A DNA stretch of 64,000 bases, from the NCBI GenBank assembly GCA_048013815.1, contig CM106586.1, forward strand, positions 13,578,001 to 13,642,000. Direction: 5' to 3'. The translations under genes were made by a program, and so were the position numbers. Positions 20,545 through 52,889 of this stretch are shown here, piece by piece. A model generated the notes under the pieces. The model had not been told where the DNA came from, did no database searches, and saw only the letters and a program-made list of their open reading frames with translations. Numbering within the stretch: position 1 is the first letter of the stretch; every line of letters starts with the position of its first letter. This stretch comes from Setoptus koraiensis (taxonomy: Eukaryota; Animalia; Arthropoda).

Positions 20545-21396
20545 TTGATAGTGCATCTAACACCTTGCACAAGCAAACAGTTTCGTGCTCATTTAATCGG
20601 TGAAAAACCGTCGAAATCTTGTTGCCGACCAGCAGACAATTGTATTGCATATTATTGGTTCGTTTCTTCGCTTCGGGGAACCATTTCAGGATTTCTGGTC
20701 ATTTCCAACGCTAACCACTGACACTGATCACCGCCATCTGCGGCCATTGGTCAGCCTTCGACCAAGTGCGGCGCAGATGGCATGTTACCCGTGGGTACAC
20801 TTGCGGCTTGTAGATGACGCTGAAACCGATAAATTACTCAGAACTCTATCTGCACCGCTGAGTAGGTCCAAAACCGATCCAATGTCTCATTTCAGGACAC
20901 GAATTGGAAACAAAAAATTTCGGTGCAACCGAAAAATTGACAAACTGAAAAAATGAAAAACCGGAAGTAGATCGACGAGCGATACAAAGCTGGCTGAGCT
21001 TAAAAAAAGACAGCTGATTCATTGTGGTCATCGGCGAAACTACAACACAACTCGTCAGTCTGAGTGGACGCATGAACACATATGTATATTTGCAATGATC
21101 CTTTTTGCCGATAAAACTCGACAGATGAAGCTCGACATAATGAGGGGCGAAATTTTTGAAGAAGAATGAAATCTCTCGAAAATTTGTCCGCCTTTGGTGT
21201 CGAGCAGCTACTCGATATTTTCAAGCTGGAATCCGCTGTTCGGACAAAGCAAAACGTTCATTTCGGACTGATTTTTCTGGGTTGATTTTTTCGGACTGAT
21301 TTTTTCGGGTTGATTTTTTCGGACTGATTTTTTCGGGTTGACTTTTTCGACTGATTTTTTCGGGTTGATTTTTTCGACTGATTTTTCCGACCAGTG
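20545..21396. mobile_element. TE-like patch with alternating TnCGGACTGA / TnCGGGTTGA subterminal-type repeats (21262-21390)
   Basis: Composition differs from the surrounding intron (A/T runs, no GGGCCC), and there is a roughly 30-bp higher-order repeat at the right end. No matching TIR or TSD found, so boundaries are approximate. Confidence 0.35.
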
Positions 21397-21540
21397 ACTA
21401 TTAGTCAATTGCGCATCCACTATCGCACAAAGCTCAAATTAGAGAAAAAACCGACAACGATCATCTTGTTCGCATTATTTGCTGACGCAATTCATCTCGC
21501 CATTTATATCCATATCTATATATTTATCCATTATTTACAG

Positions 21541-21975
21541 GCACTGGTTAACTCTGGCAGTGCAGACGAGAAGAGCGCCGAAGATCGTCTACTGGAGTTG
21601 TTGGACCAACTGGAGGAGGCTATCACCTCGATAGGCCAATCGGGTTTATTTGAACAAAATCTGAACCAACAGATAACCACGTCGGAACGGGCGGCATTGT
21701 TATCGGGCATTGATGAGGTGAATCAGGTTCGAGCCAGATCGGCGAGACAACAGTCTGTGTTGCAATTAGTCTATAATAAACTGCACGAGGCCAATAAATT
21801 TTTTGAGGACCGCATGGGCGCCCTATCGTCGAACAGCGGCAACAGTAACAGCAACCAGCAAAACAGCGGCACAATTCCAATTGGGGCCAGTGGGACCAGC
21901 GCAGCAGCGGCTAATTCGCCATCTAGACGCAATTTATCATCGACTTTCGACAATTTCATGCAGCGTTCCTCGAAG
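21541..21975 (+). CDS. PDE3: PDE3 exon 2 (helical N-terminal region)
   Basis: Acceptor TTACAG at 21540, open frame ALVNSGSADE...QRSSK, donor AAG|GTAACT. Phase 0/0 joins to RLKRASG as in PDE3A PK|RLRRS. Confidence 0.7.
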
Positions 21976-23206
21976 GTAACTACCATGGCCACATTTGCCA
22001 TAATAGTAATAATCTATTCTCTTTTGGTTGCTGTTCTTTTTTCGTTTCTTTCCAGCCAAACATTGTGTTGTTTTGTTTGCCACCCACTTGGGCTCCATTT
22101 ATTTAATTAACCTGATTCTCATTTGGTCGCTCGTTCGCTCACTTGTTTCGTAGTCTCGCACACTTTGCTAAATCAATGTTATCTACACCCGACAACCATA
22201 CAGAAAAATACGCTCTGTTGCCAGCATATACAACATTGATATTGCACCTTCTCTTTTCCAAATTGCTACCTAAAATCAAGCTAGCCAGACAATGAGTCAG
22301 ACAGTGTAATGGGCAGGCACGTAGCTGGCGGTTTCGAGCGATAATGTATGTGTGTTCGGTTGCAGTTAGTAAGTTAATTCTCACTTGATTAACTTGCTGA
22401 TTTGTGCCACTACAAGTGCCGCTACGTCGTTAGTGGCTCGTGCTCGTGCAGCCTCTCAGGCTCTCGTGGTCTAGTGGTCGCTGATTGAGCCGACTAGATG
22501 TGGATATTAATCAAGATACCAATCAAGATATCAGAGAACGAAAAAAAAAAACAAAATCAAAGCTTGCCCATCGTGTTCGAGCGCTCTCTCCCTCCCCCAC
22601 AAAAACCAAAAAGATACCAATCAACTAAATTAATATTTGACCGATTTCTGGTGCACGCTTTGTTCTCGTGTAACCTCAATTGAGAAACCCATCGATCGAG
22701 TAATTCAATCTTGTCCGTCTTATTAGATTAACGGTTTCGCTCTGCCGACCTATCTCTACCAGCAAACCTATCTTTATATATGGCATGTTTAGCCGGATTC
22801 ACGCAAACAGTTGCTAATGAACTGAATGCGAAACAGTTGCGCTGCCACACAAAAGTCAATTAGCCGTCATTTTATTTTGTTGTACCACTCAATCCACTTT
22901 AGTTCAGTCCAATTTAACTCAGTTGAGTTCAATTTAATTTAATTTAATTCAACTCAATTCAATTCAATTCAATTTAGTTCGGTTCAGTTCAATTGTGTCG
23001 CGAATGTTTATTTTTGCCGGTTTGTTACTAAAATGGCCGCCCGAAATTATTTAGTTGCTCGTTGACTACTTTGAAAGTGGGTCTACAGCTGGCGCTTTTA
23101 GCTAAAACTCGCCATGAAAAAACTCGCCAACACTAACCTTTCAACACGTTTGATACATTTTGAATATGAACCAAAAACGACGCCATTTGCAACATGCTCT
23201 ATTTAG

Positions 23207-23612
23207 CGACTAAAGCGGGCCTCAGGAAACACTTCTCTAGACTCTGGCGGCACAAGTGCTGCCACCAACGGAAGTGGTGGCTGTTTGCTGGCCAACACTT
23301 CCGTCGATTCGTCGTCACACAATAATAATGGGCAACCAGCAAGCGAGCCACAACAGTCGCGTCGTGCATCGTCAAATTTTACCCGCTCTTTATTGCGAAA
23401 TTTGACCAACTTATCGGGTGGTTCGTTTGACAAGTCGCCTAGTTCGTCCAATTCCAGTTCCAATCAGCAGCAGCAACAACAACAACAGCATCGTAACAAA
23501 TCCACGAGGCCGGCCAAAAGTGACATCGCAGCAAGCAAACAGGACAAGCGGCCAGGGGCCAGCGCTAGATGTCAGGATGAGCGCCGAAAACAATTGTCGG
23601 AGCAAAATAGGG
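23207..23612 (+). CDS. PDE3: PDE3 exon 3
   Basis: Acceptor ATTTAG, frame RLKRASG...SRRASSNFTRS (compare PDE3A RLRRS...RRVSSTWT), donor G|GTAAGT in phase 1. Confidence 0.75.
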
Positions 23613-25070
23613 GTAAGTTTTGTGTTTGTTTATACGTTTTTATTTGTACACTTTATTGATTCGCAACGAATTGATTCATTTGGCCTGTCGCTGTGTTGAC
23701 AGGCCATCAGCTATCGAGCAAATTATATTTTGTGTGCCCAGCCAGTGACAGACTGTCTTGCCAGCGAGTCGGTGCTAGTAATTGCATCATCGTCGCCTCT
23801 TTGGGCCGCTCAATCGGTCGCTGACAATGGCGAGGCGACCCCAGAGCAGTTAGTGCCTGCAACTTAGTAGGTCATTGGTACTACCAATTTGGTGGGTCGC
23901 GGCTATTTATACAGCTAGTGAGAGAGAGAGAGAGAGTCGGAAATCTTGGCCACTGGCTGGCTCGGCAAACAGACGGCGAGCGATGATGCGAAATCGATGC
24001 CCGAGCGGCCGCTCTCAGTGGGTCAGTGGGCCCCCGAAGAAGCACTAAGAATCGTATGATACAGCGAGACACCGCATTAGCGGAGGCCGGCGCCATTTGG
24101 ACGGTTGGCAAGTGGCGACGGAAACGAAACAACGGCCAGCCACGAGAATGACGCGTGATCTGGCACGGCAACTCGGTTAGGCGAAAATGGAGATTTACTT
24201 ATCTAATGAGATGAGATTGCGTCAGACGCTGCTCGTCTACGTGCCGCATTTCGCTGGTGGCCGCTGGCTAGGCCCGGCGAGTTTGCAATATATAATTTGC
24301 AACGACAAATACGGCGAAATAGTAGCAACAACTTTAATGACACACACACGATAATAGTAATGACAATGGCACCCGTTGTTGTTGTTGCTGCTGTTGTTGC
24401 TGTTGTTGTTGTTGCTGTTGTTGTTGTTGGCGCTGCCGTTGGCGAGTGTCGCTCGGCCAACGACAACAAGTGACGGTTATTATTTGTTTTTGTTGTTGCT
24501 CATTCAAGTGTAAAGTGGCTAGCTGGCTACGACGGCCAATCTATTGGGGGCATCTATTATCAGCGCGCTTATCCACGTAGCCAGCAACGCAGTTGCAAAT
24601 GGGGGGCCCACCGATGATAGATATAGTGCAATGCAGATGATGTGCAGATAAAGTGAAAAGTGAGCAGCTTGCCAGATTTCAATTGAACCCGCTGGCTGGC
24701 TGGCTGGCTGGCCGGTCGACGGGCCGGCTCAGAGGCAGCCAGCCAGCCAGCCAAAAATCGCTGACCAGCGGAGCCCCACACTCGAGCACAGCGGCAACAA
24801 CTGACTCATGTAACTGTTGTCGCGGGCCCACTGATACGGCCCCATACAGCCCGATAGAGCGGTCGAATTGGCTTTGATTCTCTCTATCTCTTTGATTGTA
24901 TCATTTAACTACAACTACTTCTACTATTTCAACACCATTCTATTGACGCGATGTAATATGATGTGTCGCGCAATATGCCCTGATATATATATATGCCCTG
25001 CCTATGATACGTCCCTGGCCGTGCCATCTGATCGGGGGCTCGATTTGCGATGCATAAATGATGAGTCCAG

Positions 25071-28000
25071 TGGCGACAATTTCCACCGCCAGAGATACCA
25101 ATCGAGACGAGCCCGACACTGTGTTGGCCGGCGGCCGACTAATGGCCGCAGCCAGCCACAGCGGTCAGTCAGAAGGGGCCCGTCAAGACATTGGAGGCTG
25201 TGGCCCGAACAAGACAGCGCCAACTTCAAATCGCGAGCCCGCCAACAATTTGAGCAGCTATGCAACGACCACCAGAGGCAGAGTGGCAAAATATCAATGT
25301 CGCGATGGCAACCACGACAGCGGCAACAGCAGCAGCAGTAGCAGCGACGACGACCACCACCACCACCACCATCACAGCCGCCGCCAAGCCAAGGGGGGTG
25401 CGGGCGGCGGCCCAGCGGACGACGGACAGCATATTAATCGCTCAAACAACTCGTCTGGGGAGCGCGATTTGCGCCGCGTATCGGCCGACAGCAATAAACG
25501 CAACGAGCCTTCAAAAGGCGGCGAGTCGGGGCGCGCTCGGTCGGACGGGCTCGAACAAAGCGCGCCTCGGCCCAAATTGGCGGCGGACAGCAGCGACAGC
25601 GGACAATTGCGTGAAGAAGAGGCCGCCACGAGAGGAGCCAGTGGAGGGCATAATTGTGATTTAGATGCCAGTGGCGCCGGGGCCAGCGGACAGGTAGAAG
25701 AAGACATAGATAGAGCGAGCAATAAGAGCATCAGAGGCCATTGTAGTGAGTGCGCCGATACTGCTGACATCCAATTAATGTCCACTGTTGGCGAGCGGCG
25801 CCCGCCGTGTTGCCAGTGCGGCCGGGGCGCCGCCAGTGTTGCCAGTGGCGAACCGGTCACTGGGAGAGAAAGTGGCCAGGTAAGGCCATTGATTATTGGA
25901 GCGCGAGTTGGCGCCGCGAACCAGGTGAGCGGCGAGCGGGCCAAACCAATTATAAGTTGTTCCTCGGCGACTGCCACATCAACATCAACAGCGGCGGCGG
26001 CGCTGGCAGCAACAGCAACAACAGCGACAGCAACAGCAACAGCAACAACAGCGACAGCAACAGCGAGCGGCCTCGACAATAATAGAGGGGCCAAGGGTAG
26101 AGCGGGCGCCCACAGAGCGGCGCCGGGCAACTTGGACGGAAACGCGCACGAGGACGCGCGCGACGGCCAGCAGATTAGCGGCCAGCGGCCAGCGGGTGCA
26201 TTATCAAAACGCGATCAACTGAGCAGATCGACGGTCGCCGCGACAACAATGACAGCGGCGGCAGCGGCAGCAGCAGCACCGGCCAAGGCGCCCCCAACCA
26301 GCAAGGCGAAGCAAGCGCTGCACGAGCCACCCATTAAAAGCGCCACGAGCAGCCGAATTTCGGCACCTTGCGGCCAAGCAGCCCGCCAAGACAGCGCCAA
26401 GACAGCGCACGCCATTGGTCAGCTGGCCGCGGCCCGACCAATGGCTGCCGGCCCGCGGTCGATGGAGCGGTCATGCCGACAGGTGGATGCGGCGACCCTA
26501 GGTGACAATTCCAATCAGCAGCAGCAGCAACAACGGGCCAGCCAGGTGAATCAGCGACAATTGCAGAGGTCGCTGTTGCGACAGCAACGACAACAGCAGC
26601 GCATCAGTAACACGGCCTCGTTGTTGGCGCGCTTTGCTGAGAACAAAAGCGTTGCCCAAGCGCAATATCTCTACTCTACATTGGCCACAAACAACGCCAC
26701 CACCGCTAATAACAGCAGCAACAATAATTGCGTAATCACTTCTACACAAGCAACAACAACAGCAACAACAACTACAACCGTCACGACAAGCGACGCCAAT
26801 AAATCGGCCAGCAGCGACCAGGGGGCGCAAACAAGTGGAACGTCGATCAAACCAGACGCAGATGCCGCCGACGCAACCAGAACCGCGACAACAACAACAA
26901 CAACGGCCACAGCCGCAAAAACGTCACACCAACAACAACAACAACAGCAGCAGCAGCAGCACCAAAAGGTGACAGCTCGCAGCACGGCGCCCAGACACGA
27001 CCGCTATGTCCAGCTGGCTATCAGGGCGCCCTCTATTGTGGAGGTGGACGACGATGAGGCAAGCGACAACAACAACAACGACAACGACCACGACCACACC
27101 GGCGGCCAAGACAACGCAAACAAGCAATCATCCATGACGCACCAGCAACAACAGCAATCACAACATGGCGACATGGCCCTTTTATCGGGTGGTCAAACGG
27201 GTTTGCTGGCCGCATCCGGCGATTGCAGCGACCAGGCGCCGACAACGGGCAAACAATTGAACTATGAGCATCAGGTAACGGGCAGCGAAACGACGGCGCC
27301 CGCAATTTGCGCGCCCGCCACAATTAATCAGGCGGCCCGTTTCAAGCCGTGGACGCGGAAGGGCTCGCTAATTAGCGGCCGTCCGGGTGTTGCAGCGGCG
27401 CCGGGCCAGCAGCAGCCGGCAGCAGATAAATCAATTATTTGCCCGGCCGTGGCCAGCAGCACCAGCAACAACAATGGCGCCAACAACCGACAGCAAGAGC
27501 AACAACAGTGCACAAGCGTGAAAGTGTCCTCTAACGACAACATACTGCAACAAACGAGCAACAATCAAGAGCTCGACATGAACGATCTAGACTCGGCAAA
27601 GCACGCGCTGCGAGCTCAAGGCGCCGACCTGGACACAGGTAACGGTAATTTTATAATGGCCACCAGGCGGAGGAAATCAATTCATGTGATGCACCAACAT
27701 CAGCTGCAACAACTGCAACAACAACAGCAGCAGCAACAGCAACAGCAGCAACAACAACAACAGCAACAACACAATCGCTCGGTGACTGCGTCCGTGGGCG
27801 GCCTGTTCCGGTGTAAAACAAGTGCCAGTATGACACCGTCGGCGTCGCTGTTGAGCGCCTCATCAATTGGCTCAAATCAACTTGCGTTTGCGGGATTGTC
27901 GTCTGATTGCGACTCAACAACAACAACCAGCCAAGATGCCATTCCTAGCAGCGTGACAAGCCGACAACAACGGCACAGTATTGGCAGCAACGACAGTGAC

Positions 28001-28703
28001 GCAATGGGCCATTTTAAACTGGGGCCCACTGGCGGCGCTGCTGCTGCTACTGGCGCCAATGCCGGCCAGGCGGCCATCACGACCACGACAACGACCACGC
28101 CAGACCAACAACAACCACAACATGCTTTATCCATTAGGGCGCCCACTGGCACGTCAATGTCATCGACGGGCAAACGGCAGGCGAGCGCCGACAGCAACGA
28201 GGTGCAACTTGTCACCGACGACGCTGATAACAATTCCCAGAAACAACAACAGCAACAACAAACGGAAGCGGATAAATTATGTAGAGTGTCCTATCACAGC
28301 GACGACACTCAATCTATTTTGAAAGGATTCTCGTTCTCGTCGGACCATGACGCCGAATTAGCGCCAATAGTCGATGTCGATATTAGCGCCATGAGCGACA
28401 ACAACACAAAACAACAACACCAACAACATACGCTGCCGGCCACAACAATAGCTACGACAACAACTTATTTAGACGGCCAGCACCACGACAAGCTTGCCAG
28501 CACAGCCAGCCAACAATTTTGCTACACCATAGGCGACATATTGTACGATTTAAAAGAATTGGAATCGCTAAACACAAACGAGTGCCTGCTGGCCTCATTA
28601 GACGATTGGAATTATCCCATATTCGAGCTGGCCACGCGCTACAGCGACTCCATACTGTCCAAGCTGAGCTATAGGATATTCCACGATTCGGGCTTCTTCG
28701 AAT
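25071..28703 (+). CDS. PDE3: PDE3 exon 4 (about 3.6 kb low-complexity linker plus the start of the catalytic domain)
   Basis: The first phase-compatible CAG after the upstream stop is at 25070. The exon ends LDDWNYPIFEL...ILSKLSYRIFHDSGFFE, then T|GTAAGT. The 5' boundary is less certain than the 3' boundary. Confidence 0.85.
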
Positions 28704-28891
28704 GTAAGTTTCCCCCCCCCCTCTGGCCCCATTCAGTAGAGCCTCTGCTGTGGGCTGGCCCCAGCGCAAAAATGCGGCCTCTTGTGACTCGCCGGGTACC
28801 AAGTGCCGTCGCGTCGTCTGGCCCGACCCGCACACCCGGCCACGCCGCCAATTGCCGGCGTGTATTGGCGACGTGCCGGGCCCCAATTGGC

Positions 28892-28966
28892 CTCAGTATC
28901 GCTGAGTCGAGTCAGTATCGCTGAGTCGGTATCGGTGAGCCGAGTCAGTATCAGCGAGTCAGTGAG
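28892..28966. repeat. Degenerate 19-mer repeat (GAGTCAGTATCGCTGAGTC) with an internal CTCAG/CTGAG palindrome
   Basis: Read directly, inside the PDE3 intron 28704-29177. Confidence 0.75.
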
Positions 28967-29177
28967 GCCGCAATTCATTTCGCGCTCGAGTTGCCAGTCG
29001 GGGTCAGTCGATTGTGGCCATCGCACGCCATTCATCAATATTCATCCTGCCAGACAAGTGTCACTCACCCCTGCCGTCTTATCTGCTGTGTCCCCTTTAT
29101 CCCTTTATCACTGTGTATTCATATATCGCGCTCACTACTCATTATGTCGTCACTATCTGGTGTGCGCTCGAGTGCAG

Positions 29178-29249
29178 CCTTCAAAATACCCAGACAGCAA
29201 TTCTTCAACTACTTTCACGCTCTCGAGGAGGGCTACCAACGAAAGCCTT
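29178..29249 (+). CDS. PDE3: PDE3 exon 5
   Basis: TGCAG|CC...CCT T|GTAAGT, encoding (S)FKIPRQQFFNYFHALEEGYQRKP, the PDE3 FKIP..F.NYFHALE.GY motif. Confidence 0.95.
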
Positions 29250-29488
29250 GTAAGTATCAACTGTGCAACTACTAATTAACTGGCCCACTCTTAATGGGGC
29301 CAAGCTGAGCGCCGTCAGTGCTGTCAGTGCGCCAACTGGTTCATTATTGAGCCATAATTAGCATACGCTCGTGCAGGCCGAAAACTAGATTAGACTTAAT
29401 ATTCACTTAATATGATCATGTCATCCGTCTCCCACTACCCCGCACCGCACCATCCCGTACCACCCCGCGCTATCCGCGCCCGCCGGAA

Positions 29489-29625
29489 CGACCGACGCGA
29501 CCGACGCGACCGACGCGACCGACGCGACCGACGCGACCGACGCGACCGACGCGACCGACGCGACCGATGCGACCGACGCGACCACCGCACCGAAACGACC
29601 GACGCGACCGCCGCACCGAAAACGC
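29489..29625. repeat. (CGACCGACG)n 9-mer array abutting a splice acceptor
   Basis: About 10 near-perfect units plus degenerate ones, ending just before the CAG at 29630. Confidence 0.95.
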
Positions 29626-29630
29626 ACCAG

Positions 29631-30193
29631 ATCACAATCGGCTGCACGCCGCGGACGTTCTTCACGCCGTCTATTATCTGACCTCGCAGCCCATTGACGA
29701 CTTTTGTCAAGTGCCATTGGATCTAATTGATCATTATGACGATTTGTTGAACTCGACCAAACGAAACTACACGCCCACGACGGCCGCAAATCTGTTGCGG
29801 GCCGCTACGGGCCCGAGCACCCCAAACGCCGACTGCAATCAGCAACAGCAACATCATTTGCTACAAGACGAGGAATTTGTTAATACGCTCACAAATCACG
29901 TTGTGGCCGTTGTAGTTGCAGCGGCGGCCGCCGCCTCAGATTCGGAATCGCCATTTGGCATAATGGGGGCCAATTTAACAGCATTAGAAGTGATGGCTTT
30001 ATATACGGCCGCAGCCATGCATGATTACAATCACCCAGGTAGAACCAATTCGTTTCTCGTCGCCACTAGCTCCCCATTGGCGCTTCTATACAACGATAGG
30101 TCAGTTTTGGAGAATCATCATGCGGCCGCCGCTTGGGCGCTATTCTATTCGGAGAAGAATTTTAATTGGTTGCAAAATCTTGATAAGGATGAG
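29631..30193 (+). CDS. PDE3: PDE3 exon 6 (metal-binding core and PDE3-specific insert)
   Basis: (Y)HNRLHAADVLHAVYYL, HDYNHPGRTNSFLV, LYNDRSVLENHHAAAAW, donor GAG|GTAGGT. Confidence 0.95.
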
Positions 30194-30388
30194 GTAGGTG
30201 CCCTATTAATATGTTTCATTACCTGTTTGCTCTATACACTTTATTTGGCGTTGTCACTGGCGCTGTTGTTGGCGCTCTCGGCGCTTTTGCCGCTTTGGGG
30301 CCCAACTTAGCTTAGCCGGGCCCCCAACGCTCGCCACTCCACTGATAGTGCCAACAAGCTGGCCACTCGACGCCGATAATCCGCCGCC

Positions 30389-30510
30389 GCCAACAACAAC
30401 AACAGCAACAACAGCAACAACAGCAACAACAGCAACAACAGCAACAACAGCAACAACAGCAACAACAGCAACAACAGCAACAACAACAGCAACAGCAACG
30501 GCAACAGCAC
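30389..30510. repeat. Intronic (CAA CAA CAG)n tract
   Basis: Read directly. Confidence 0.9.
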
Positions 30511-31905
30511 CAACATGCTATGGCAATTTTCTAGATTGATATGGCTGAATATAAGCCAAGTTTGTAGTTGCCCGTTTGCGCGCTCGCTTCTCGCAAGCGA
30601 CCCGCTGTAGGCAGGGTAACTAGAGGGGCCCGGAGTAGTAATTGCCCGCTACCTCTCAATCCCTTCCGCCTGAACAATGTTGCCAGTTTGCGCCCAACTG
30701 GCTAAATTGGCAATCAGCCAGCCAGCCGGGCTTACCGGCTGGCCTGTTGGTAGGCCCGGCGAGCCGCTGAGCCAACGCGCTAGATGGGGGCCTCCACGCG
30801 GCCCAAACGCTGCAACCCGCGGCCGCCATCGGAGGTGGGGTTGGCGATGGCCATCGGCCGGCCTCTGACGGGCAACGGCCCGAGCTCGGCGGGCGGGCCG
30901 CTGCACTAAACTAACTTTAGAGTTTGAGCGCACGTTGGCGGAAACTGCTCAGTGGGCTCCCTCAAATAACGGCAATCGCTCGCGTGTTATCCAAAGAAAA
31001 ACACTCAAACACAAAGAATGTATATATATATATAAATACATGATACAGCGAGATTGGCCAATGAGATTGGACTGGAGCGGAGTTTTATTTTATTTCGCTC
31101 ACAAGTTGCTGCCAAGTGGCGGCCATTGTTCGCTTGGAGAGTGCTGGCAGTGCATTGTTGATGAGAGAAGTGAACGAGAGTACCAGTGAGGCCATTATAA
31201 AATCAATTGACAATGTCGACAATATAACTGGTGTAAATGTCAATATTTGATTTACTTTTGCCACTACTATTGCAGCTCTCGCAAACCTGAATGGTGCATG
31301 CCAGCCAGCCAGTATGAGTGCGCTATACGTGCCACTCTCACCAAGACCTCTGAGGCATGAAAGAGGATTAAAAAGCATGGCTCAGACGAAAGCGCGAGAG
31401 GGCTGAGGGCCAACCTATAACATGGGCGCTAACGAGGGCACAACAATGAACAATCAATTATCCAGAATTAAAATTTAAAACTTTCGCGAGATTCGCGAGA
31501 TTCGCGAGATTCGTGAGATTCGTGAGATGACGCCCGTAGTGTTGGGCGCAAATAATGATTTCACTAGCCCTCAATACTGGCCTCAATATAATAGATGGAG
31601 ATATGACGGCAGGTGAATTGGGTTTCGTGTGGTTTGTGGGGCCATTTGTGTTGATATTGCCATTGTGTTGAATGCGGTGCGATGGAAATTTTGATCGAAT
31701 AGTGTCCTCTCGATCTGTAGGGATGCTTTTCAATTCAATCGTTATAAATATTTTTATTAACACCCTTTTCTTTTCTATACCACCCATCACGACCAATTAT
31801 AACAATATGATGTAACACTCACACTATATGGTGCCAACAACCGGATAAAACCGCTACAAAAAACACACGTTCACACTATCATTGCGAATTATCATTTGTA
31901 ACTAG

Positions 31906-31995
31906 TTCAAGAGATTTAGATTCATGATAATAGAATTAATCCTGGCAACTGACTTGATGCGCCATTACGAGCTCGTGGGCGCTTTCAATAAGAAG
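31906..31995 (+). CDS. PDE3: PDE3 exon 7
   Basis: ACTAG|FKRFRFMIIELILATDLMRHYELVGAFNKK|GTAAG, phase 0/0. Confidence 0.95.
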
Positions 31996-32175
31996 GTAAG
32001 CTCACGTAACAATAACAATAATAATACATGTAAAATAACTCACAATAATGATACAATAATTGACTGGCGTGCTGCGAACAAAATTCTGTATCATTATTCT
32101 CAACATCATCATTATCTTGCTCAATTGCAACACTAACAATATATATATATATATATATATAACACATATATCCAG

Positions 32176-32429
32176 CTCAATGAATACGGTGGCCATAATA
32201 TAGATTGGTTTTGTGAAAGTGATCGATTACTTGTGATGGAGATTATTATTAAATTGGCAGATGTTAATGGACCCATGAAGGCGCATCACATACACAGCCA
32301 ATGGACAGATAGAATAGCGGATGAATTTTATGAACAAGGCGATGAAGAGAGGGCTCTCAATCTACCTGTGTCCCTCTATATGGACAGAGCGGATCCTCGT
32401 CTACCGGAACTGCAAAAATCTTTCATCAA
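32176..32429 (+). CDS. PDE3: PDE3 exon 8
   Basis: TCCAG|[11 protein letters not shown]...IKLADVNGP...QWT...EFYEQGDEE...LQKSFI (invariant Gln), donor AA|GTGAGT. Confidence 0.95.
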
Positions 32430-32555
32430 GTGAGTATTATTTTCAAACAGCTAAACGCTCATTTTACTCTCAATCATTTTTGCTATGGCCAATATCCGCC
32501 AGTTTGTTTTTGTTATTATTTCATTGATTTATTCTTGTCCACGCCAGACAAGACT

Positions 32556-32603
<48 letters not shown>
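32556..32603. repeat. (ATG)16 microsatellite
   Basis: Read directly, intronic. Confidence 0.95.
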
Positions 32604-32605
<2 letters not shown>

Positions 32606-33463
32606 AAGCCTACATCACTGATTAGGTGACAATAGACAACAACTAGACAAACTGCACAAAATTTGTGCTCTCGTCACGGCAGTCTCGCGTCAGCCAGAAG
32701 ATGATCAAATCTCACTGATTGATGAGACCGTTTTATCCTGTTGTTGTATTTGTACCTGCTGTATTCTCACCGAGCCAATACAAGAATAACAAGTTGAGAA
32801 AAGAAAACAATTTGAGGTACCCTACACTTGAGTGTCAATACAACACTGGCCAATATCAAATCCTGTTCTGTTATGTTCAGTTCGGTCGAGCTCAGATGCC
32901 ATCCGATTCAATTGCTTCGAATGCAGCTCAGTTCAACGTATCCATTTATTTCTATCTAGTTGAGTAGTCACAGTCGGTTGACCTCATAAATAATTCAGCT
33001 TGCCCTCTAGGGTGGAGAGGGCGGACGTCGAGTTGGCTAGTACGCCATTGCCAGAACGCTTTTGCGAGGTATACAACGATAACAGAGAAACTGCTCTTCA
33101 ATCTTTTTCTTCGCCCGTTAGTCGACTAGTTCCTCTGGTTATTGATACGATTATATAGACAGGCAACGTGTGTGGGGCGATTAACACAAATAATAAACCA
33201 TCTAATGAACTAGAGGGTTGACAATGTCATGATGTGGTATTATCCACTTATATATATATATATATATATATATATTGATTGCTGCATGAGAGATACATAT
33301 ATACAAATGTATCTCATGCAGCAATTAGCGATGACGCAATAATGTTAGTTCTAATTATTATTTATGCCCACTTTAATTTGTGCATATGTACTAATAAGTG
33401 CTCTTCTTATAACAATTCAACCTCTACTTTCACCTATTCTGCCTATTAACTGTTCCCCGTCAG

Positions 33464-33938
33464 TCATCTTGTTGGTCCGTTGAGCTATTCGTACGCATTA
33501 GCGGGATTCTTTCCTGGCAAAACTCCGTCTGGTTGGAGTAGGCAAGACATGGACAAGTTGCAAGATGACGAGGATAATGAGAGAGATAGAGATAGACCAG
33601 CAGCAACAGCAACAACAATGTCAATGAACAGTGATAACATGGATTGGTCGGCCATTTATACAAATAATACCGATATCGACAACAATCAACAAGATAATGG
33701 CATGATGGGCGACATTAAAGAACAAACCAAATATTGGGTTATAGAGGATAAAAGAAAACTCAATAGTATGCTCACTAACAGCATACAAACAATTAATTTA
33801 AGAAACAACTTTCTATTTTGGGACGCAAAATCAAAATTGGACGCAAATAAGAACAGTAGTCAAGTGACAGCAGCCAACAGTGATACAAGCGATCAAGTTT
33901 GCATAGACGATTGCAAAGACGACGAATTAAATGACTAG
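33464..33938 (+). CDS. PDE3: PDE3 terminal exon 9
   Basis: The phase-2 acceptor CCGTCAG gives NHLVGPLSYSYALAGFFPGK (compare [20 protein letters not shown]), followed by an acidic stretch and stop TAG at 33936-33938. Confidence 0.9.
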
Positions 33939-34850: not shown

Positions 34851-35024
34851 GTCGGAAAAAGTTGATCGTTTTACGGAATCATAACTGGAAATATCTGTCC
34901 TATCCATACTTGTCAATTGGTTTATCCAATAATCAAGCCACACCATATTCAAGTGTCTACTCTAGATAATATTTTCAAAATTATTGTGTCCATCATTAGA
35001 AATCATTTATTAAAAAACTAAATT

Positions 35025-35237
35025 ATGCCTAAACAAATCAAAGAGATCAAGGATTTCCTTATTAAGGCCAGACAACCCCAGGCCAAATCCGTCAAAATCA
35101 AGAAGAACGAGGACAACTACAAATTCAAGCTAAGATGTAGCAGATATCTGTTCACGTTGGTTGTCGAGGATAAGGAGAAATCCGAGAAATTAAAGCAATC
35201 TCTGCCCCCTGGACTGCAAGTTAAAGAGCTAAAATAA
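35025..35237 (+). CDS. RpL38: 60S ribosomal protein L38 (eL38), copy 1, intronless
   Basis: 70 aa [16 protein letters not shown]...VKIKKN...[15 protein letters not shown]...[16 protein letters not shown]. Confidence 0.97.
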
Positions 35238-36237: not shown

Positions 36238-38355
36238 TTAAGAATATAACCTGATTGTCTTGTCAGCGCCACATGTGAAGATCCAAGGCTGGCTTGGGTG
36301 AAATATACAATCAGTCACAGTCTTCGAATCGTGATGCTCGTGGCCATGAAGCAATTTTACAGGAACTATAAGAGGATTTTGTAACAGATCATCGTAGACC
36401 ATACCATGACTCACGATAACGTGTCCATCCTCTGATCCGGATGCAAACAAGGGGTAACTTCTATGATAACAAACTGATCTTATAGCGCCTTTGTGATATC
36501 TCATAGTCTTATACGGTTTAGTGGAAAGATCTGTATCAAACCAGACCAACCTCGGGTCGAAGCTGCCCAGAAGTAGATTGTCTCCTCCAGGGTGGACGGC
36601 GATGCTTGAGGTACTTTTTAAACCAGTGGTTAGCTTTTTGATCAGTTGTTGCTTCACAAGATCGTAGATTTGCACGGACCTATCGTCGGCAGCGAAAAAT
36701 TGTGGTTTTTTGGGATGAAATGCGACCCTCTGGTAAGTCAGTTTTCCTTTTTTGAAAGGAATTTGACTCTGTTTTTTGATGAGATGATTGATTACAACTG
36801 ATGAACTTCTGGCAGTAGGCATGACTACAGCAAAATAGTCTCCTTTGTTGTGCCAGGTTATTTGTTCTATTTCATGAGCATATTCTACATATAATCTGTA
36901 TCCCTCACGCCACTTTTCATCATCTTGCTTTTCACTTAAAGTGATCCATTCAACAAGTGATTTTGACGTGGAGGCCTTCTGCTTCTCATCGCTTTGTGCA
37001 TTGCTCAATTTGAACATTAAATCCGTCTCTTCGGTTATATTTGAGTCACCAACTTTAGGATTGATCATCCAAACTTTTTTGCCTGTCACTACAGCCAGCA
37101 CTCCCAAAGACACGTTGGGACACCAAGACACAAATTTCACAGTCTCTTCGAACTGGATCGTTCTCCAACATCTTGCGGTAGAAGTTTCCCATATCTTCAC
37201 AGTGCAGTCCTCACTTCCTGAAGCAAAGAATTGGCCTCTTAGTTCAACTGTAATAGAGTTAACAGTATCTCGATGACCCTTGTATACCAAAGCTTGGGCA
37301 GAGGGGAAGGGCTGTAGGTCTTTGGGTCTTGGTAATTGAGGTATCAGTGAGTCAGGGTCTACATCTGCACGCTTCCTGCGTTGCCTGGGGGCCAGGTAGA
37401 GTTCGAGGCATCGTTCGAAGCGCTCACGAACATAATTCTTATAGAATGGTACGGATCTGAGATTGCCAAATCTTTGTGGAAGGAAAAATGAGTCGCGTTC
37501 CTCTTCTGACAGAGACTCCCATTTTTTAACATCGTCAGTTGTCAATAAATATTCAGGTGGCGGATTGTATGACTCTGCATGACCGGGCAAGCTCATTTTT
37601 GGTGCAGCAATGTGGCCACGATGTCTCCTGTCATTGATGTCTCCATCTTTTAGCCAGAGATCGTAGGAGAACTTGAACTGATCTTGCTTTTTGGGCTTAG
37701 GTTTTGTAGGTTTGATTCTACCAGTTTTAATCATTTGCACTAATTTTGTGATGGCCCTTTTCTCGGACAAGGAAGGAATAAACGACGCCTTGGTCTCGGG
37801 TCTGTTTTGCACGGGATGAATGGAGACCTCTCTACTAAAGAAGTCAGTGTATGGTTCGTAGGCATCATATGAGGAATCTGGATATGTAGCATTCCTTATT
37901 CTATTGATAACGTCAATGTCTTCGTCGGAAAGTACCACCTTCCTGCCCGTGAGTTTATCATAGACCGTCCTGAAGTAGTTTGGATCGTCGCACTGTGCAA
38001 GGAAGTCGTCAATGGCGGTGCCAAGACTACCGGGAGGCTTCATGATCTTCTTTCCATCTCTGTCGTAACCCAAATGCTCGTGATCCTTGTACCAGTCTAT
38101 GTCTATGTTTCCTACTGTATTTTCCACATCCTCTTCATCGGATGTATCAGTGGCAAACTCACTCGACGAATAACCGTCTGCTTGATCTGAATCCTCGAGG
38201 GAATTACTGTCTTCTTCTTCGGATTCCCACTCTTCGTCGTCCGATTGTGTGTCGCCATTGGTTTCGGAGGAATTATTGGTAGTTTTGGCTAGCTCTTTTT
38301 TGCTGACCGCCTCGTTGAGCTTTTTACCGGTCGACGTTTTGGTTATGCCCACCAT
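36238..38355 (-). CDS. BOP1: Ribosome biogenesis protein BOP1 (Erb1), intronless
   Basis: NTVGNI..DWYKD..HLGYDRDGKKI, IAAPKMSLPGHAESYNPPPEY, then a C-terminal WD40 propeller. Confidence 0.97.
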   Translation of the reverse strand: MVGITKTSTGKKLNEAVSKKELAKTTNNSSETNGDTQSDDEEWESEEEDSNSLEDSDQADGYSSSEFATDTSDEEDVENTVGNIDIDWYKDHEHLGYDRDGKKIMKPPGSLGTAIDDFLAQCDDPNYFRTVYDKLTGRKVVLSDEDIDVINRIRNATYPDSSYDAYEPYTDFFSREVSIHPVQNRPETKASFIPSLSEKRAITKLVQMIKTGRIKPTKPKPKKQDQFKFSYDLWLKDGDINDRRHRGHIAAPKMSLPGHAESYNPPPEYLLTTDDVKKWESLSEEERDSFFLPQRFGNLRSVPFYKNYVRERFERCLELYLAPRQRRKRADVDPDSLIPQLPRPKDLQPFPSAQALVYKGHRDTVNSITVELRGQFFASGSEDCTVKIWETSTARCWRTIQFEETVKFVSWCPNVSLGVLAVVTGKKVWMINPKVGDSNITEETDLMFKLSNAQSDEKQKASTSKSLVEWITLSEKQDDEKWREGYRLYVEYAHEIEQITWHNKGDYFAVVMPTARSSSVVINHLIKKQSQIPFKKGKLTYQRVAFHPKKPQFFAADDRSVQIYDLVKQQLIKKLTTGLKSTSSIAVHPGGDNLLLGSFDPRLVWFDTDLSTKPYKTMRYHKGAIRSVCYHRSYPLFASGSEDGHVIVSHGMVYDDLLQNPLIVPVKLLHGHEHHDSKTVTDCIFHPSQPWIFTCGADKTIRLYS

Positions 38356-38699
38356 ATCTAGACGATCCCTTATAAAATAATTGACTAATGTATGATAAAT
38401 ATTTGAATATATGATAATAGTAATAGACTAATAGGATATTGATTTAGAAGAGAAGAAATATTTATTGCATGAACACGTGCCTTTTTTCGAATGAACATGG
38501 AATGATAATTGGGCGGCACGCTGAGTTACTTTTGAGCGGTATATTCAAATACAAAAAAAGTTTTTCGAACTTGAAAGAACATGGTTCTTTTCACAACAGA
38601 AAAACAACAAGCAAACAAATTCTTTTACTTAGTAATAATGAACTTATGTCTTATTTATTCATCAAAAATCTAATCACCATAAGCAAGTAAGTGTATAAT

Positions 38700-39983
38700 T
38701 TAGCGAGAGTCAGTATTTGATTTGTTTGAGGTTGGTGTTGGTGTTGGTGTTAAATTATCATCAGTACAGACAGTTGTTGAGGGCATGGAATCATCATGAC
38801 AGTCAGTTGTGGTTGATTCTGTTTGGCCTGTTAGAATCGAGATGGTGTCACTGGGCGTAATAACGGTTGTGGACGGCTCACTTCTCGATGTATCACAAGA
38901 ATAAATTGACCTGTTATCGTCTCTAAAGATGTCGTTTGTGTCGTGTTGCAAGACCGCATCATTATCAATTTTGTTTGTATCTTCATAAGCGGCCATAACA
39001 CGATGACAGGTGCCTATTGCATTATTGTCACTGCTGCTGCTGATATCGTCTTCGGCATCCGAAGAATCAGAATTTTGTTGCTGTTGTTGTTTGTTTTGAT
39101 AACAACGGGAATATTTGGCTAGATGTTGTGCATCTTGTTCAATGTTCATATGAATAGCAGTGCTATCTTGGCTTGTCAGGGTGTTGTCATATTCGACCCT
39201 GGTGAATTGTCGTTGCTGTGAGCGAGGTGTGGGTGATGCTGGATGCGTTGAGTTAGAATCACTGGTTGTTAGGGCATTTGTAGCGTTGAACGTTGTCCAT
39301 TGAAACCTGTTGAAGCAGGCACCGTCTATGTGATCGTGCTGATTCAACGGTTGACATTTTCTAAAATCGAAATTCCACCTTCGACAATTGTCTCGATGCA
39401 ATCGTTCCATTTGATCATTTAACCATATTCTATTTGATTGGCGATAGCTGCGCCGATGCGCCTCTTCACGTTGAGCCAAGGTGGGCAAGCCACTTGTGTA
39501 TGACGATCTTCGCAATAATAGTGGCCGTGCACTAGTGCTGCTATCGGCAGGATTGTTTCTGTTGTTGCGACGATGGAGATGGTCGTCGTCGTGGTGTTGA
39601 TCGTCGAACAGTCGCCTGGTGACTCGTCTACGTTGAGCTGGCCTCCTCAGATGTTGCAGTTGGCACAGTGGCGATTGTCTGGTTGCGCCGTCGCCAAATT
39701 GATTGCTGCTGCTGTCAACGATATTGTGTAACGGTGTTGTTAAGACGGCTTGAGCTGTTGTTGTTGTTGTTTCTACTGCGAATTGCTGGCGCTCTGTTGA
39801 TGGCGACAAAACAGTTTGTTGCTGTTGTTGCGTGTCGCTCATAGACACCAATGAGGGCGACGGGCTTGTCGGCGGCGACGCTGGCGATGCAGATGACGAG
39901 CTGGTCTGATGGTGCTGACGCTGATGCATAATATTCAAATCGGCAGCGATTAAATTGATAATGATGTGCACCAAGATGGACAT
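38700..39983 (-). CDS. Cip/Kip-family CDK inhibitor (dacapo/p27-like)
   Basis: Cyclin-binding RRLF motif (about 39606-39617) and RRWNFDFRKCQPL...RFQW kinase-binding motif (about 39295-39385). The remainder is disordered S/T/D/Q-rich sequence. Start codon uncertain. Confidence 0.85.
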   Translation of the reverse strand: MSILVHIIINLIAADLNIMHQRQHHQTSSSSASPASPPTSPSPSLVSMSDTQQQQQTVLSPSTERQQFAVETTTTTAQAVLTTPLHNIVDSSSNQFGDGATRQSPLCQLQHLRRPAQRRRVTRRLFDDQHHDDDHLHRRNNRNNPADSSTSARPLLLRRSSYTSGLPTLAQREEAHRRSYRQSNRIWLNDQMERLHRDNCRRWNFDFRKCQPLNQHDHIDGACFNRFQWTTFNATNALTTSDSNSTHPASPTPRSQQRQFTRVEYDNTLTSQDSTAIHMNIEQDAQHLAKYSRCYQNKQQQQQNSDSSDAEDDISSSSDNNAIGTCHRVMAAYEDTNKIDNDAVLQHDTNDIFRDDNRSIYSCDTSRSEPSTTVITPSDTISILTGQTESTTTDCHDDSMPSTTVCTDDNLTPTPTPTSNKSNTDSR

Positions 39984-40149
39984 TTGGCGCTGCTGCTGCT
40001 GCTGCCACTGACTGTGCTGAACAATGCTGAGAATGCTGCTTCAATGAGATAATTGGCGATGATTATATAATTATAATTATATGAAGTGAGTTGCGCAATC
40101 ACGTGTGCGATCTGAAGGAGCCGGCGCCGATCGTCAGCGAATCCATGCG

Positions 40150-47685: not shown

Positions 47686-49670
47686 TTAATCCTGCATCCA
47701 AGACTTTGGCAACCATTGAGGTTCACACTCGATTCTGTTGATCTCTTTCAGCAATTCTTCACATGCTCCTTCAATATCGCTGACCGATAAAATCATATCG
47801 ATATATGGTCGGTACTGAGATTCGATGAATTCTGCTTCTTCACTGATTTTTCGGAGTGGTTTGACGAAAACAAAGTATGGCTTGAGTTTTGGCCCAGCAG
47901 GTCCTTGTCTCAAGATGAGAATAGATGGCACATGAAGGTTCAAGACACAGGTCTATAAGAAGGGATGGAGAGCAAAACAAGATGAGGATTAGTAAGTTAT
48001 CTTGGTAATATTCTACTTAGTTGCATAAGACAAAAATTCTTAAAACTTACCTTTCCTGACTGCACAACAGCATCTATCGCTTCGAAAGAGGTACCATAAT
48101 AGTGTTTCTCGTATTCTCCGTGTTCAACAAATTTACCTGCTTTTACATCAGCTTCGAAATGTGCCCTGCTCACATAAAAGTAATCTAAACCATTTTTCTC
48201 TCTATCTTTGATAGGTCGAGTTGTATGAGGTATTGCAGCAGCAAACCTATCGTGTTCTTGGAGAAGCCTATGTCTGATTTCCTGTCTACCAATATTTGTA
48301 GGGCCTATCATAACTATAGGTCGTTTCATATTACCTTTCGGATAGTAACAACAAACTTCCTCGTAAGCGGGTATCTCTTCGGGAGTCATTGGAATGTTGA
48401 GAGATTTCTTCCTTCGTCTAGGGGACGTTCCTTTCCCACAATTCAGCAGGATTGATGCCGGCGATCGTTTATCTGTTCTATTGTACCTCCTGTAGGCATC
48501 ATTACTATTTGTTGAGTCTGACAATACTCTCTCTTTACGAATGTGAAAGCTTTGTGAAGGTATCAAGCCGGCAAGAGAATTTTGACTGTCAGCCTCTCTG
48601 TATGCTTGCCACCAATCAGGGTCACTTCTATCAATTATCTGAAGAATTTCGCCTTTATCAAAGCTCATACCCAAGTCTTTACATGGAATGTATTCATCTT
48701 CGTGAGCTTTGTATTCGAAGAGAGCCTTAACAAAAATTCTCTGCTTCGACATGGGTTCTATAGGACGTGGATAGTTTCGGACTCTGATCATAAAGGTTAA
48801 TGTTCCCTTCATTTCGTTGAGAATATCGAACACTTCATTTACGTTTTTACCTCTCATCTCTATACCATTCACTTCCAAAATTTCATCGCCTTCATGTAGG
48901 AGACCAGATTCTGCTGCAGCACCTCCGCTGACAACCCTACCTATGACAACACTGCCATCTAGTTCGTTTCGAACTGTTGCTCCTAAGGGTTGACAAGAGG
49001 TTTTTTCAACTTTAGCCAATATTACGCCATCTCCCATGTCCATTACATGACTCCTATTGACTGTTGGATTCCTATTGGGGGAACTTGTAGGGAAGTTAAA
49101 TGATTGAGAAATTCTCTCAAATGCTGAGCAGACTCCTTGAATTGGGTACTTCGTTAATATAGCCAATAATTCAGCTGCATCCTGAGACATATCACCTTCT
49201 TGGAGGATAGAAATTACTGAATGGAGAAGATCTGTCGCTTTGATAGGTTTGAGTTTTGGTGATTCGAAAGGTATTTTTTGCTGTTTCATGAGAGTGCTAT
49301 AAATTGATAAAAGTTTACACAAGTTGGCATCGTTAGCTACATCAGAGAATTGATTATTTAAGTTACGCTGTAACCTGCTATGAACAGAGCACAAGTCAGG
49401 AAGGGGTGCAACAGGGGCCTGAGCAGATTCATCTTCGTCTGGTTCGAATGCCTGGTTGATGGCAGGTTGGATGACATGATGTTGCTGCTCTAGTTGTTTC
49501 AATCTTTTGCTATCTCTCAGGCTATGAGGTTTTGGCGGTGGATATCTGGGCGACTGCTTAGCCACTCCGATGAATGAATCAGGCACATCTACTGGCAGTT
49601 CCCTGTGTTTTGTTTGATTTGTGCTACCATACAGTTCTACCAACTCCATTTTGGTTGATTCCACTTTCAT
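47686..49670 (-). CDS. sdt: Stardust/PALS1 (MPP5) MAGUK; exons 49670-48051 and 47952-47686
   Basis: ECR1-like HRELPVDVPDSF...PRYPPP, two L27-like regions, PDZ, SH3, HOOK and GK. A 98-nt GT-AG intron (47953-48050) restores GK|TCVLNL...LKPYFVFV...EPQWLPKSW. Confidence 0.95.
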
Positions 49671-51968: not shown

Positions 51969-52601
51969 TCATTGATCTAGTTTAATTTTATTTTCTTCGT
52001 TCCATCTGAGAGCACTCTCGTAAGCTTCACTACTGACACGACCACTTTGTTTGAGGGCGTCAAGTACCTCAGAGATCGTAAACAGGCTATTGAATTGTAC
52101 GTCCTTATTGTCGAGTCTCAACTTTTCTAAACCACCTTGTTCTCTGTCTATTATCACGAAAACGGACTTGACAGTCCAACCCTGTTCCTTGCATCTGTCT
52201 ATCATTTCCTGAATACTGCTGCCTGATGAAACAACGTCATCAACGATGACCAGTCGAAACTTCTGTTTGTCGAATTCAGCATAGGGATCTTGCAAGCCGT
52301 AACTTTTCTTTTCCTTGGGCGTGTATATATGTCTGAGGTCGGCTTCATAAGCAATGGAATAGCTTAGGCAAAGAGCACCCTGAGGTACGCCAACCAACGC
52401 AACATTTTCTCTGTCTTGTGGGGATGGGAAGAATTCGCGCACAACTAATTGGCATAAAGGTTTACGTAGTTCGGGAATCAAATCTCTAAGGTTCATATAG
52501 TAAGGTGCCTGAACACCTGATTTCAGGGTGAATTTGCCAAATTTCACGCATTCTGAATCGGATAGTAGATTGATCGATTTGAGCTTCAGTTCCTGGGTCA
52601 T
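51969..52601 (-). CDS. Stand-alone orotate phosphoribosyltransferase (UMPS N-terminal-like, 210 aa, no ODC domain)
   Basis: KFGKFTLKSG..APYY.NLR, GVP, KEKKSYG, PRPP loop VIVDDVVSSGSS and IIDREQGG, then a stop after KIKLDQ. Confidence 0.9.
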   Translation of the reverse strand: MTQELKLKSINLLSDSECVKFGKFTLKSGVQAPYYMNLRDLIPELRKPLCQLVVREFFPSPQDRENVALVGVPQGALCLSYSIAYEADLRHIYTPKEKKSYGLQDPYAEFDKQKFRLVIVDDVVSSGSSIQEMIDRCKEQGWTVKSVFVIIDREQGGLEKLRLDNKDVQFNSLFTISEVLDALKQSGRVSSEAYESALRWNEENKIKLDQ

Positions 52602-52889
52602 TTCTATTGCTGGTGCCAGTAATTATGAAGATATTACCTAGAGTTGATTCTTAAATATGGTATGGCTCAATTATTGGATGAATCGACAGGTGAGTAGATG
52701 AAGAGGTAAGGGAGATGTTGATCGAGACACGCGCACGTTTCACGTTAGGTTCCCATGCCCAGACCATGCCTTGAGCACGTGATCTTGACCGAGAATCAGC
52801 ATAGACAAACGCAAAAGTGGATCTTTCGCGGCGAATATCTTCCATGTTGCGCACGTTCAGTATATTCACTTTACGGCGCATGCGTACTG

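Follow-up and report, generated by a model that had tools for sequence, protein, structure and literature searches.

How a 3' splice site is chosen at the end of an intron that carries a long stretch without the dinucleotide AG is the question raised by a gene for PDE3, the cGMP-inhibited 3',5'-cyclic nucleotide phosphodiesterase, in a 64,000-nt stretch of DNA from Setoptus koraiensis (GenBank assembly GCA_048013815.1, contig CM106586.1, positions 13,578,001 to 13,642,000; hereafter the window, in whose own coordinates all positions are given). An earlier note on this DNA had claimed that AG-free runs of more than 90 nt precede seven of eight PDE3 acceptors, that branch-like motifs lie at the far 5' end of several of these runs, and that the lineage routinely defines its 3' splice sites by scanning from a remote branch point. 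We found that the exclusion of AG is real and specific to this dinucleotide. From comparison with related sequences we consider it moderately probable that eriophyoid mites, the group from which the window comes, take as their 3' splice site the first AG beyond a branch point more distant than that of other animals.

AG exclusion before the PDE3 acceptors

AG dinucleotides were counted on the + strand, both strictly and by the rule published for the AG exclusion zone (AGEZ; Gooding et al. 2006, PMC1431707), under which any AG within 12 nt of the acceptor is disregarded. A recount reproduced exactly all eight run lengths of the earlier note. Strictly counted, the AG-free runs before the eight acceptors measure 94, 103, 3, 3, 235, 183, 173, and 63 nt; with a GAG at -7 to -5 disregarded at acceptors 25071 and 29178, the two runs of 3 nt become 204 and 112 nt (209 and 117 nt up to the acceptor). 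Skipping the GAG at these two sites, as the earlier note had done, is permitted by the AGEZ definition, and use of either GAG would break the reading frame. Six of the eight zones are at least 100 nt long under the AGEZ rule (103, 209, 117, 235, 183, and 173 nt) and the remaining two measure 94 and 63 nt, which bears out the figure of seven acceptors in eight with more than 90 nt (five in eight strictly). The zones and their candidate branch sites, together with a control intron from another gene, are as follows, negative numbers being positions relative to the acceptor.

21445-21538, + strand: AG-free zone of 94 nt; the best branch candidate is TGCTGAC (21480-21486), with its A at -56
23102-23204, + strand: AG-free zone of 103 nt; CACTAAC (23131-23137), with the candidate branch A at -71
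24860-25068, + strand: AG-free zone of 204 nt, then GAG (25063-25065) and the used CAG; possible branch sites at 24903 (ATTTAAC, -163) and 24941 (TATTGAC, -125)
29059-29175, + strand: AG-free zone of 112 nt, then GAG (29170-29172) and the used CAG; possible branch sites at 29062 (CACTCAC, -111), with a pyrimidine run after it, and at 29129-29142 (CGCTCAC/TACTCAT, -44/-37), the second being a block partly conserved in the sister contig L001
29394-29628, + strand: AG-free zone of 235 nt; immediately after the last AG comes the block ATTCACTTAATAT (29401-29413), conserved in the sister contig L001; the 9-mer repeat (29489-29619) contains neither T nor YTNAY
31721-31903, + strand: AG-free zone of 183 nt; candidates are TATTAAC (31755-31761, -146) with a pyrimidine tract and a weaker CGTTCAC at -33
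32001-32173, + strand: AG-free zone of 173 nt, the whole intron after the donor GTAAGC; CACTAAC (32131-32137), with its A at -40
33399-33461, + strand: AG-free zone of 63 nt; candidates are TACTAAT (33389-33395, -70), 3 nt ahead of the bounding AAG, and TATTAAC at -15
47953-48050, - strand: control intron of 98 nt in a MAGUK gene; donor GTAAGT, TACTAAT with the candidate branch A at -37, AG-free for 46 nt

The motifs to which the earlier note had drawn attention, namely CACTCAC at 29062 with its pyrimidine run, ACTTAAT at 29405, and TATTAAC at 31755 with CCCTTTTCTTTTCT, are present where it had placed them.

The last 100 nt before the eight acceptors contain 5 AG against 31 expected from base composition (z -6.1), while neither GA (39 vs 31 expected) nor CT (50 vs 57) is depleted; GG is depleted as well (8 vs 20 expected), because the zones are G-poor (14.6% G). 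Gaps of at least 90 nt between successive AGs make up only 1.6% of the 304 internal gaps in the seven complete introns, and upstream of the zones AG occurs about as often as expected (5.6% vs 6.1% in the window; 6.5% in relatives, where 6.1-6.2% is expected). The depletion exceeds what composition predicts. Composition as the whole explanation was ruled out by mononucleotide shuffles together with the GA and CT controls; it contributes to the effect without explaining it.

Tandem repeats are present in two zones only, as a 9-mer array (29489-29619) and as an (AT)n tract, and simple repeats were rejected as a full explanation, since they touch no other zone and the 235-nt zone still measures 104 nt without its repeat. 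The array, in the zone before 29631, is a 9-nt tandem repeat (CGACCGACG) of 14.8 copies that is absent from the sister species and over which the depth of the DNA runs rises; it has the look of a recent AG-free expansion by which the spacing between branch point and acceptor increased. No RNA structure bridging branch point and acceptor was found, three zones folding no better than shuffled sequences (z -0.15, +0.45, and +0.72).

The acceptors were taken from a PDE3 model of eight exons which, with donors as read from the sequence and GTAAGT-like throughout, gives a single open frame of 1975 codons ending in a stop.

21541-21975, + strand: PDE3 exon A; open frame, with a start homologous in the sister-species contig L011
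23207-23612, + strand: PDE3 exon B; its frame links exons A and C
25071-28703, + strand: PDE3 exon C; 3.6 kb in one stop-free frame, largely low-complexity
29178-29249, + strand: PDE3 exon D (SFKIPRQQFFNYFHALEEGYQRKP); intron position common to all relatives
29631-30193, + strand: PDE3 exon E; start of the catalytic domain, including the PDE3-type insert; Pfam PDEase_I, E 3e-27
31906-31995, + strand: PDE3 exon F; PDEase_I (PF00233) profile positions 99-127, E 7.7e-5
32176-32429, + strand: PDE3 exon G; PDEase_I, E 1.7e-18; 86-89% identity in relatives
33464-33938, + strand: last PDE3 exon, up to and including the stop codon

Exons E, F, and G together cover positions 24-213 of the PDEase_I profile (PF00233). 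When exon E was searched with HMMER against the whole library, the first matches were exon-sized open reading frames (ORFs) of unassembled relatives, followed by named PDE3A-like proteins; the best named matches are all cGMP-inhibited PDE 3A-like proteins, from a tardigrade, Limulus, a tick, and a spider. The PDEase_I domain and these closest named relatives identify the gene, by sequence similarity, as PDE3. In exon E about 110 residues separate HNRLHAADV from the next Pfam-matched block, and an insert in the catalytic domain after YHN...HAADV is a feature that we take to be specific to PDE3.

With regard to the individual junctions, a purpose-written protein-to-genome spliced aligner recovered the five catalytic-region junctions of the window exactly, and it placed introns after model residues 1492, 1516, 1703, 1733, and 1818 at identical positions in the majority of relatives with contigs spanning them, seven related contigs having introns at the same positions with GTAAGT or GTGAGT donors. 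The split codon T|AT at exon E rebuilds the conserved YHN motif, the junction DE|FKRFRF at exon F is common to relatives, and the split codon AA|T at the last exon yields SFINHLVGPL, which is conserved in relatives. Farther upstream, the start of exon A (GVTNS...EKSAEDRLLELL) matches L011, with sequence diverging upstream of that start; exon B shares its donor (AAG|GTAACT) and its first nucleotides (CGACT) with L011; and the intron after model residue 145, between exons A and B, is present in L011, the sole sister contig that covers this position. Exon C can be aligned to relatives at its 3' end, and its acceptor at 25071 is set by frame continuity alone, in phase 1. Five of the eight acceptors are thus predicted from PDE3 homology, two more from the sister species, and one from the frame. 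A tblastx comparison of positions 2300-25200 with the relatives' loci yielded no conserved upstream PDE3 exons.

Several further features of the gene were seen. Exon C, a single exon of poly-Q, poly-T/A, and poly-N/S tracts for the most part, holds a regulatory region that far exceeds in length that of named PDE3 orthologues (784-1136 aa in total). Another AG-free run, of 143 nt (21250-21392), ends in CCAG|TGAC about 150 nt upstream of acceptor 21541 and within the same open frame (21382-22107) as exon A; to judge from the sequence, it could end in an alternative or additional acceptor. In the region of exon E, six relatives (L002, L005, L006, L007, L009, and L012) carry an additional intron, in phase 0 and placed after residue 1665 where ...SPL meets ALLYNDRS, which the window does not have; this looks like the loss of an intron within the catalytic domain. 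The alignment of L001 also reads through residue 1665 without an intron, but it ends downstream in a spurious intron. Relative to the window, all four DNA runs have an insertion of CAGC after 30714, and two of them have 9 nt missing at the TTCGCGAGA repeat at 31483; both are assembly or strain differences in the intron between exons E and F.

Candidate branch sites and related mites

PDE3 contigs of relatives (L001-L012) were taken from Logan and ENA assemblies, leaving out L003 and L004 (duplicates of L002) and L008 (a duplicate of L007). Only introns at conserved positions were tabulated, which gave 35 introns in relatives and, with the eight of the window, 43 in total. Apparent introns that the aligner placed in the relatives' low-complexity N-terminal regions, with poor donors and at non-conserved positions, were discarded as artefacts. 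PDE3 of the tardigrade Hypsibius exemplaris was set beside them.

This window: 8 introns, median AGEZ 145 nt, 6 of them reaching 100 nt
Eriophyoid relatives: 35 introns, median AGEZ 68 nt, 9 of them reaching 100 nt
Hypsibius exemplaris (tardigrade) PDE3: 16 introns, median AGEZ 34.5 nt, range 19-55 nt

Zones are longer than in the tardigrade both in the window (Mann-Whitney p ~5e-5) and, likewise, in the relatives, and they are longer in the window than in the relatives (p 0.001). The closest relative, L001, has ~87-94% protein identity in the catalytic exons; at two orthologous acceptors it is AG-free for 136 nt and for at least 141 nt (the contig ends at the latter), although its 3' intron sequence has largely diverged there and lacks the 9-mer repeat, and at two further acceptors it is AG-free for 49 and 59 nt. 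These alignments indicate that AG exclusion persists in relatives despite diverged intron sequence. Of 40 introns, 31 have GTAAGT or GTGAGT as donor. Several relatives also have tandem acceptors of the form GAGCAG or AAGCAG (L007 9884-9889 and 11203-11208; L009 6714-6719), at which either AG keeps the frame, making them candidate NAGNAG alternative 3' splice sites.

Over the final 200 nt of the 43 introns, CTAAC ranks among the most enriched pentamers (28 copies vs 9.3 expected, z 5.2). When the last 400 nt are considered, 28 of its 30 copies fall within the AGEZ plus 15 nt, where 7.3 would be expected against 5.1 outside (binomial 1.5e-8). CTAAY, that is, CTAAC or CTAAT, is found within the AGEZ plus 15 nt in 30 of the 43 PDE3 introns across species, a way of picking the motif that is partly circular and to that extent weakens the case for a branch-site signal, the inside/outside count of CTAAC being the non-circular test. 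In the introns with CTAAY the putative branch A has a median distance of 50 nt from the acceptor (interquartile range 36-68, range 16-102). The sequence next to the acceptors is only moderately rich in pyrimidines, with 60% pyrimidine and 22% T. The nearest AG upstream of CTAAY is a median of only 10 nt away, roughly the background spacing, so that the branch-like motif marks the start of the AG-free zone; a zone that starts at the branch site is the hallmark of choosing the first AG downstream of the branch point (Gooding et al., PMC1431707).

Within the window, the intron before 29631 makes, on the sequence, the strongest individual case that a branch point is truly remote. Its last 140 nt contain no T and hence no YTNAY, and its only candidates, TATTCAC and ACTTAAT at -221 to -232, come straight after the last AG and belong to a block (ATTCACTYAATAT) conserved in L001, while the rest of the zone has diverged. 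Distal candidates followed by pyrimidine runs are also found at 29178, 31906, and 25071, with weaker proximal ones at 29178 (-37/-44) and 31906 (-33). A branch consensus with a pyrimidine tract at the 5' end of the zone is seen at 29631 and in many introns of relatives, and is plausible at 29178, 31906, and 33464.

The group to which these sequences belong is indicated by an intronless BOP1 ORF (36241-38427, - strand), whose best named relative is Fragariocoptes setiger (68% identity, vs 51-54% for other acariform mites); the window is, on this evidence, that of an eriophyoid (gall or rust) mite, a member of an intron-poor animal lineage. An Atlas search with the BOP1 sequence did not discriminate between taxa. 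Among eriophyoids 75-80% of genes are single-exon (PMC7738191; bioRxiv 10.64898/2026.08.24.746826), with ~0.5 introns per gene (bioRxiv 10.64898/2026.08.24.746826). Most genes in the window likewise read as single ORFs, and the uninterrupted BOP1 (729 aa), RpL38 (35022-35234, + strand), OPRT (51972-52622, - strand), and a dacapo-like ORF with a CDI domain (38703-40040, - strand) fit the massive intron loss reported for the group. In the literature searched we found no paper on splice signals (branch point or AG exclusion) of eriophyoids, and an arthropod-wide search gave the same result.

Weighing the explanations

In the mechanism that we propose, eriophyoid introns would combine a strong GTAAGT or GTGAGT donor with a yeast-like CTAAC or CTAAT branch site and a weak polypyrimidine tract by the acceptor, and the 3' splice site would be the first usable AG downstream of the branch point, AGs being bypassed where they lie within ~10 nt of the branch point or where a poor GAG stands a few nucleotides ahead of a CAG. 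A new AG in the stretch from branch point to acceptor would act as a premature acceptor, and selection would therefore keep this stretch AG-free, while AG-free sequence, such as microsatellites, could be inserted into it freely. The candidate branch A would typically lie 36-70 nt from the acceptor in the lineage, and up to ~100 nt; in PDE3 of this species the spacing would have grown further, with AG-free zones of 63-235 nt. It is from sequence that we infer CTAAC as the branch site, the modelled acceptors as the sites used in vivo, and scanning as the mechanism.

Measured against these data, the proposal of scanning from a remote branch point gains from the AG exclusion, from the position of CTAAC at the zone edge, and from the tardigrade zones of 19-55 nt, and it has to be narrowed in two respects. 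Zones that routinely exceed 90 nt are a feature of this gene in this species; they are typical neither of the lineage, with its median of 68 nt, nor of the MAGUK intron, whose 46 nt mean that such zones are not universal even within the species; "routinely remote" is better read as typically 40-100 nt in the lineage and 60-235 nt in this gene. A branch point at the far end of the zone has its best case at 29631, but a long zone does not always imply one, at least four of the eight introns having good candidates at -37 to -56.

A number of observations weigh against remote branch points and lend some force to a different account, which we judge unlikely but worth setting out, namely that branch points lie at an ordinary distance (~15-45 nt) and that the extra AG-free length comes from G-poor, low-complexity intron ends, maybe together with a more general selection against cryptic acceptors, in a lineage whose polypyrimidine tracts are weak and in which branch-like sequences abound. 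Candidates near the acceptor include CACTAAC at -40 (32176), TACTCAT and CGCTCAC at -37/-44 (29178), CGTTCAC at -33 (31906), TATTAAC at -15 (33464), and TGCTGAC at -56 (21541), and CTAAY itself is found in only three of the window's eight introns (23207, 32176, and 33464), the others having degenerate YTNAY only. The zones are 12-14% G against 23% upstream, and part of their length is compositional, GG-free runs being about as long as AG-free runs; the 9-mer repeat makes up 131 nt of the 235-nt zone, and the (AT)n tract lies inside another. Some zones, moreover, extend more than 100 nt past the closest CTAAC. At 32176 the motif lies at -40 in a zone of 173 nt, and at intron 1703 of L005 CTAAC stands at -39 and -75 in a zone of 183 nt; scanning from the nearest strong motif does not explain zone length in these two introns, where zones outrun the probable branch site, and zone length thus overestimates branch distance in some introns. 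Finally, all but one (MAGUK) of the introns come from a single gene family. On the other hand, ordinary distances leave unexplained that AG is still 6-fold depleted after correction for composition while GA is not, and that the nearest upstream AG lies ~10 nt before CTAAY in most relatives, a link that would be unexpected if the zone were unrelated to the branch site. They also fit poorly with the 29631 intron, in view of its last 140 nt without T or YTNAY and of the block shared by the window and L001 at the far end of its zone.

Two other explanations were considered. The long zones might be an artefact of acceptor choice, an AG that ends a long AG-free run having been picked while the true acceptors, or small exons, lie elsewhere; we regard this as very improbable. 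The public sequencing runs that carry the locus are all DNA, with contigs contiguous across the introns, and the read contigs over 27701-33700 contain four SNPs and no splice joints, one apparent joint with a 21-nt side being probably a repeat artefact. None of the four SNPs lies in an AG-free zone, a number that gives a polymorphism test no power. Acceptor 25071 is set by the frame, and five of the 12 AG-free runs of at least 90 nt within 20-35 kb are not ahead of a modelled acceptor. These points would suit an artefact, but independent spliced alignment gave the five catalytic-domain junctions exactly, seven relatives have the same intron positions with GTAAGT donors, split codons rebuild the conserved YHN and SFINHL, and exons A and B have starts with homologues in the sister species. 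Just as improbable, in our view, is that long zones mark regulated, alternatively spliced exons and not a general property of the lineage. In vertebrates, where they are enriched ahead of skipped exons, distant branch points have been linked to exon skipping (Gooding et al. 2006, PMC1431707; Taggart et al. 2017, PMC5378181); here, however, the pattern is found at all eight consecutive acceptors, including those of exons for indispensable parts of the catalytic domain, skipping of the 72-nt exon D would delete conserved catalytic-domain sequence, skipping of E or G would break the frame, and the trend is seen in every eriophyoid relative sampled.

We thus retain the reading in which the first AG after a comparatively distant branch point defines the 3' splice site. 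A wider proposal, which we advance tentatively and hold at somewhat less than even odds, is that the eriophyoid clade remodelled its 3' splice-site definition, converging on a yeast-like system after massive intron loss, with the spacing between branch point and acceptor left free to drift to hundreds of nucleotides. If this were true, eriophyoids would be the first animal lineage with distant branch points as the rule and not as a rare regulatory device, matching changes would be predicted in U2AF, SF1, or second-step factors, and these mites would offer a natural experiment on splice-site definition while a genome sheds most of its introns. Gene finders derived from ordinary arthropods, which look for a branch point no more than 40 nt away along with a pyrimidine tract, would mis-score the acceptors of these mites, several of which are crop pests, and taking the first AG after CTAAC as the acceptor could make for better annotation where there are few RNA data.

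Comparison with known splicing systems

The PDE3 introns of the window resemble vertebrate exons with distant branch points (PMC1431707; PMC5378181) in that a long AG-free stretch runs to the acceptor with normal AG frequency upstream, a branch-like motif and a pyrimidine run lie at the 5' end of the zone in some introns, AGs very near the acceptor or branch point are bypassed, and the zone is conserved between species without conservation of its sequence. They differ in frequency, an AGEZ of at least 100 nt being present at six of eight acceptors of one gene here and at nine of 35 in relatives, as compared with 838 of 67,334 human introns (1.2%), where such zones are tied to alternative exons (Gooding et al. 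2006, PMC1431707). In contrast to vertebrates, the zones here also apparently include those of constitutive catalytic-domain exons, and the candidate branch motif is much nearer the TACTAAC consensus.

PDE3 of Hypsibius exemplaris, with ordinary metazoan 3' splice sites, belongs to the same gene family and has GT-AG introns as here. Unlike the eriophyoids, it has T-rich acceptor tracts and degenerate donors, and CTRAY is absent from the last 200 nt in 11 of its 16 introns.

A further likeness is to intron-poor eukaryotes, which have repeatedly evolved strong WCTRAY branch sites together with a strong donor and a variable distance from branch point to AG, though not in animals (Irimia and Roy 2008, PMC2483917). 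As in such eukaryotes, for example Saccharomyces cerevisiae (PMC2483917), the eriophyoid introns show a strong donor, a strong (A)CTAAC branch consensus, a variable branch-to-AG distance, and a weak polypyrimidine tract, and most introns have been lost; the same WCTRAY-type motif in most introns, which characterizes the intron-poor type, is found across the PDE3 family (30 of 43 introns), with three of eight in the window itself. The intron-poor eukaryotes of PMC2483917 have at most 0.1 introns per gene, whereas the eriophyoids are animals with ~0.5, and while several intron-poor yeasts have very short, fixed distances between branch point and AG, the eriophyoid distances are long.

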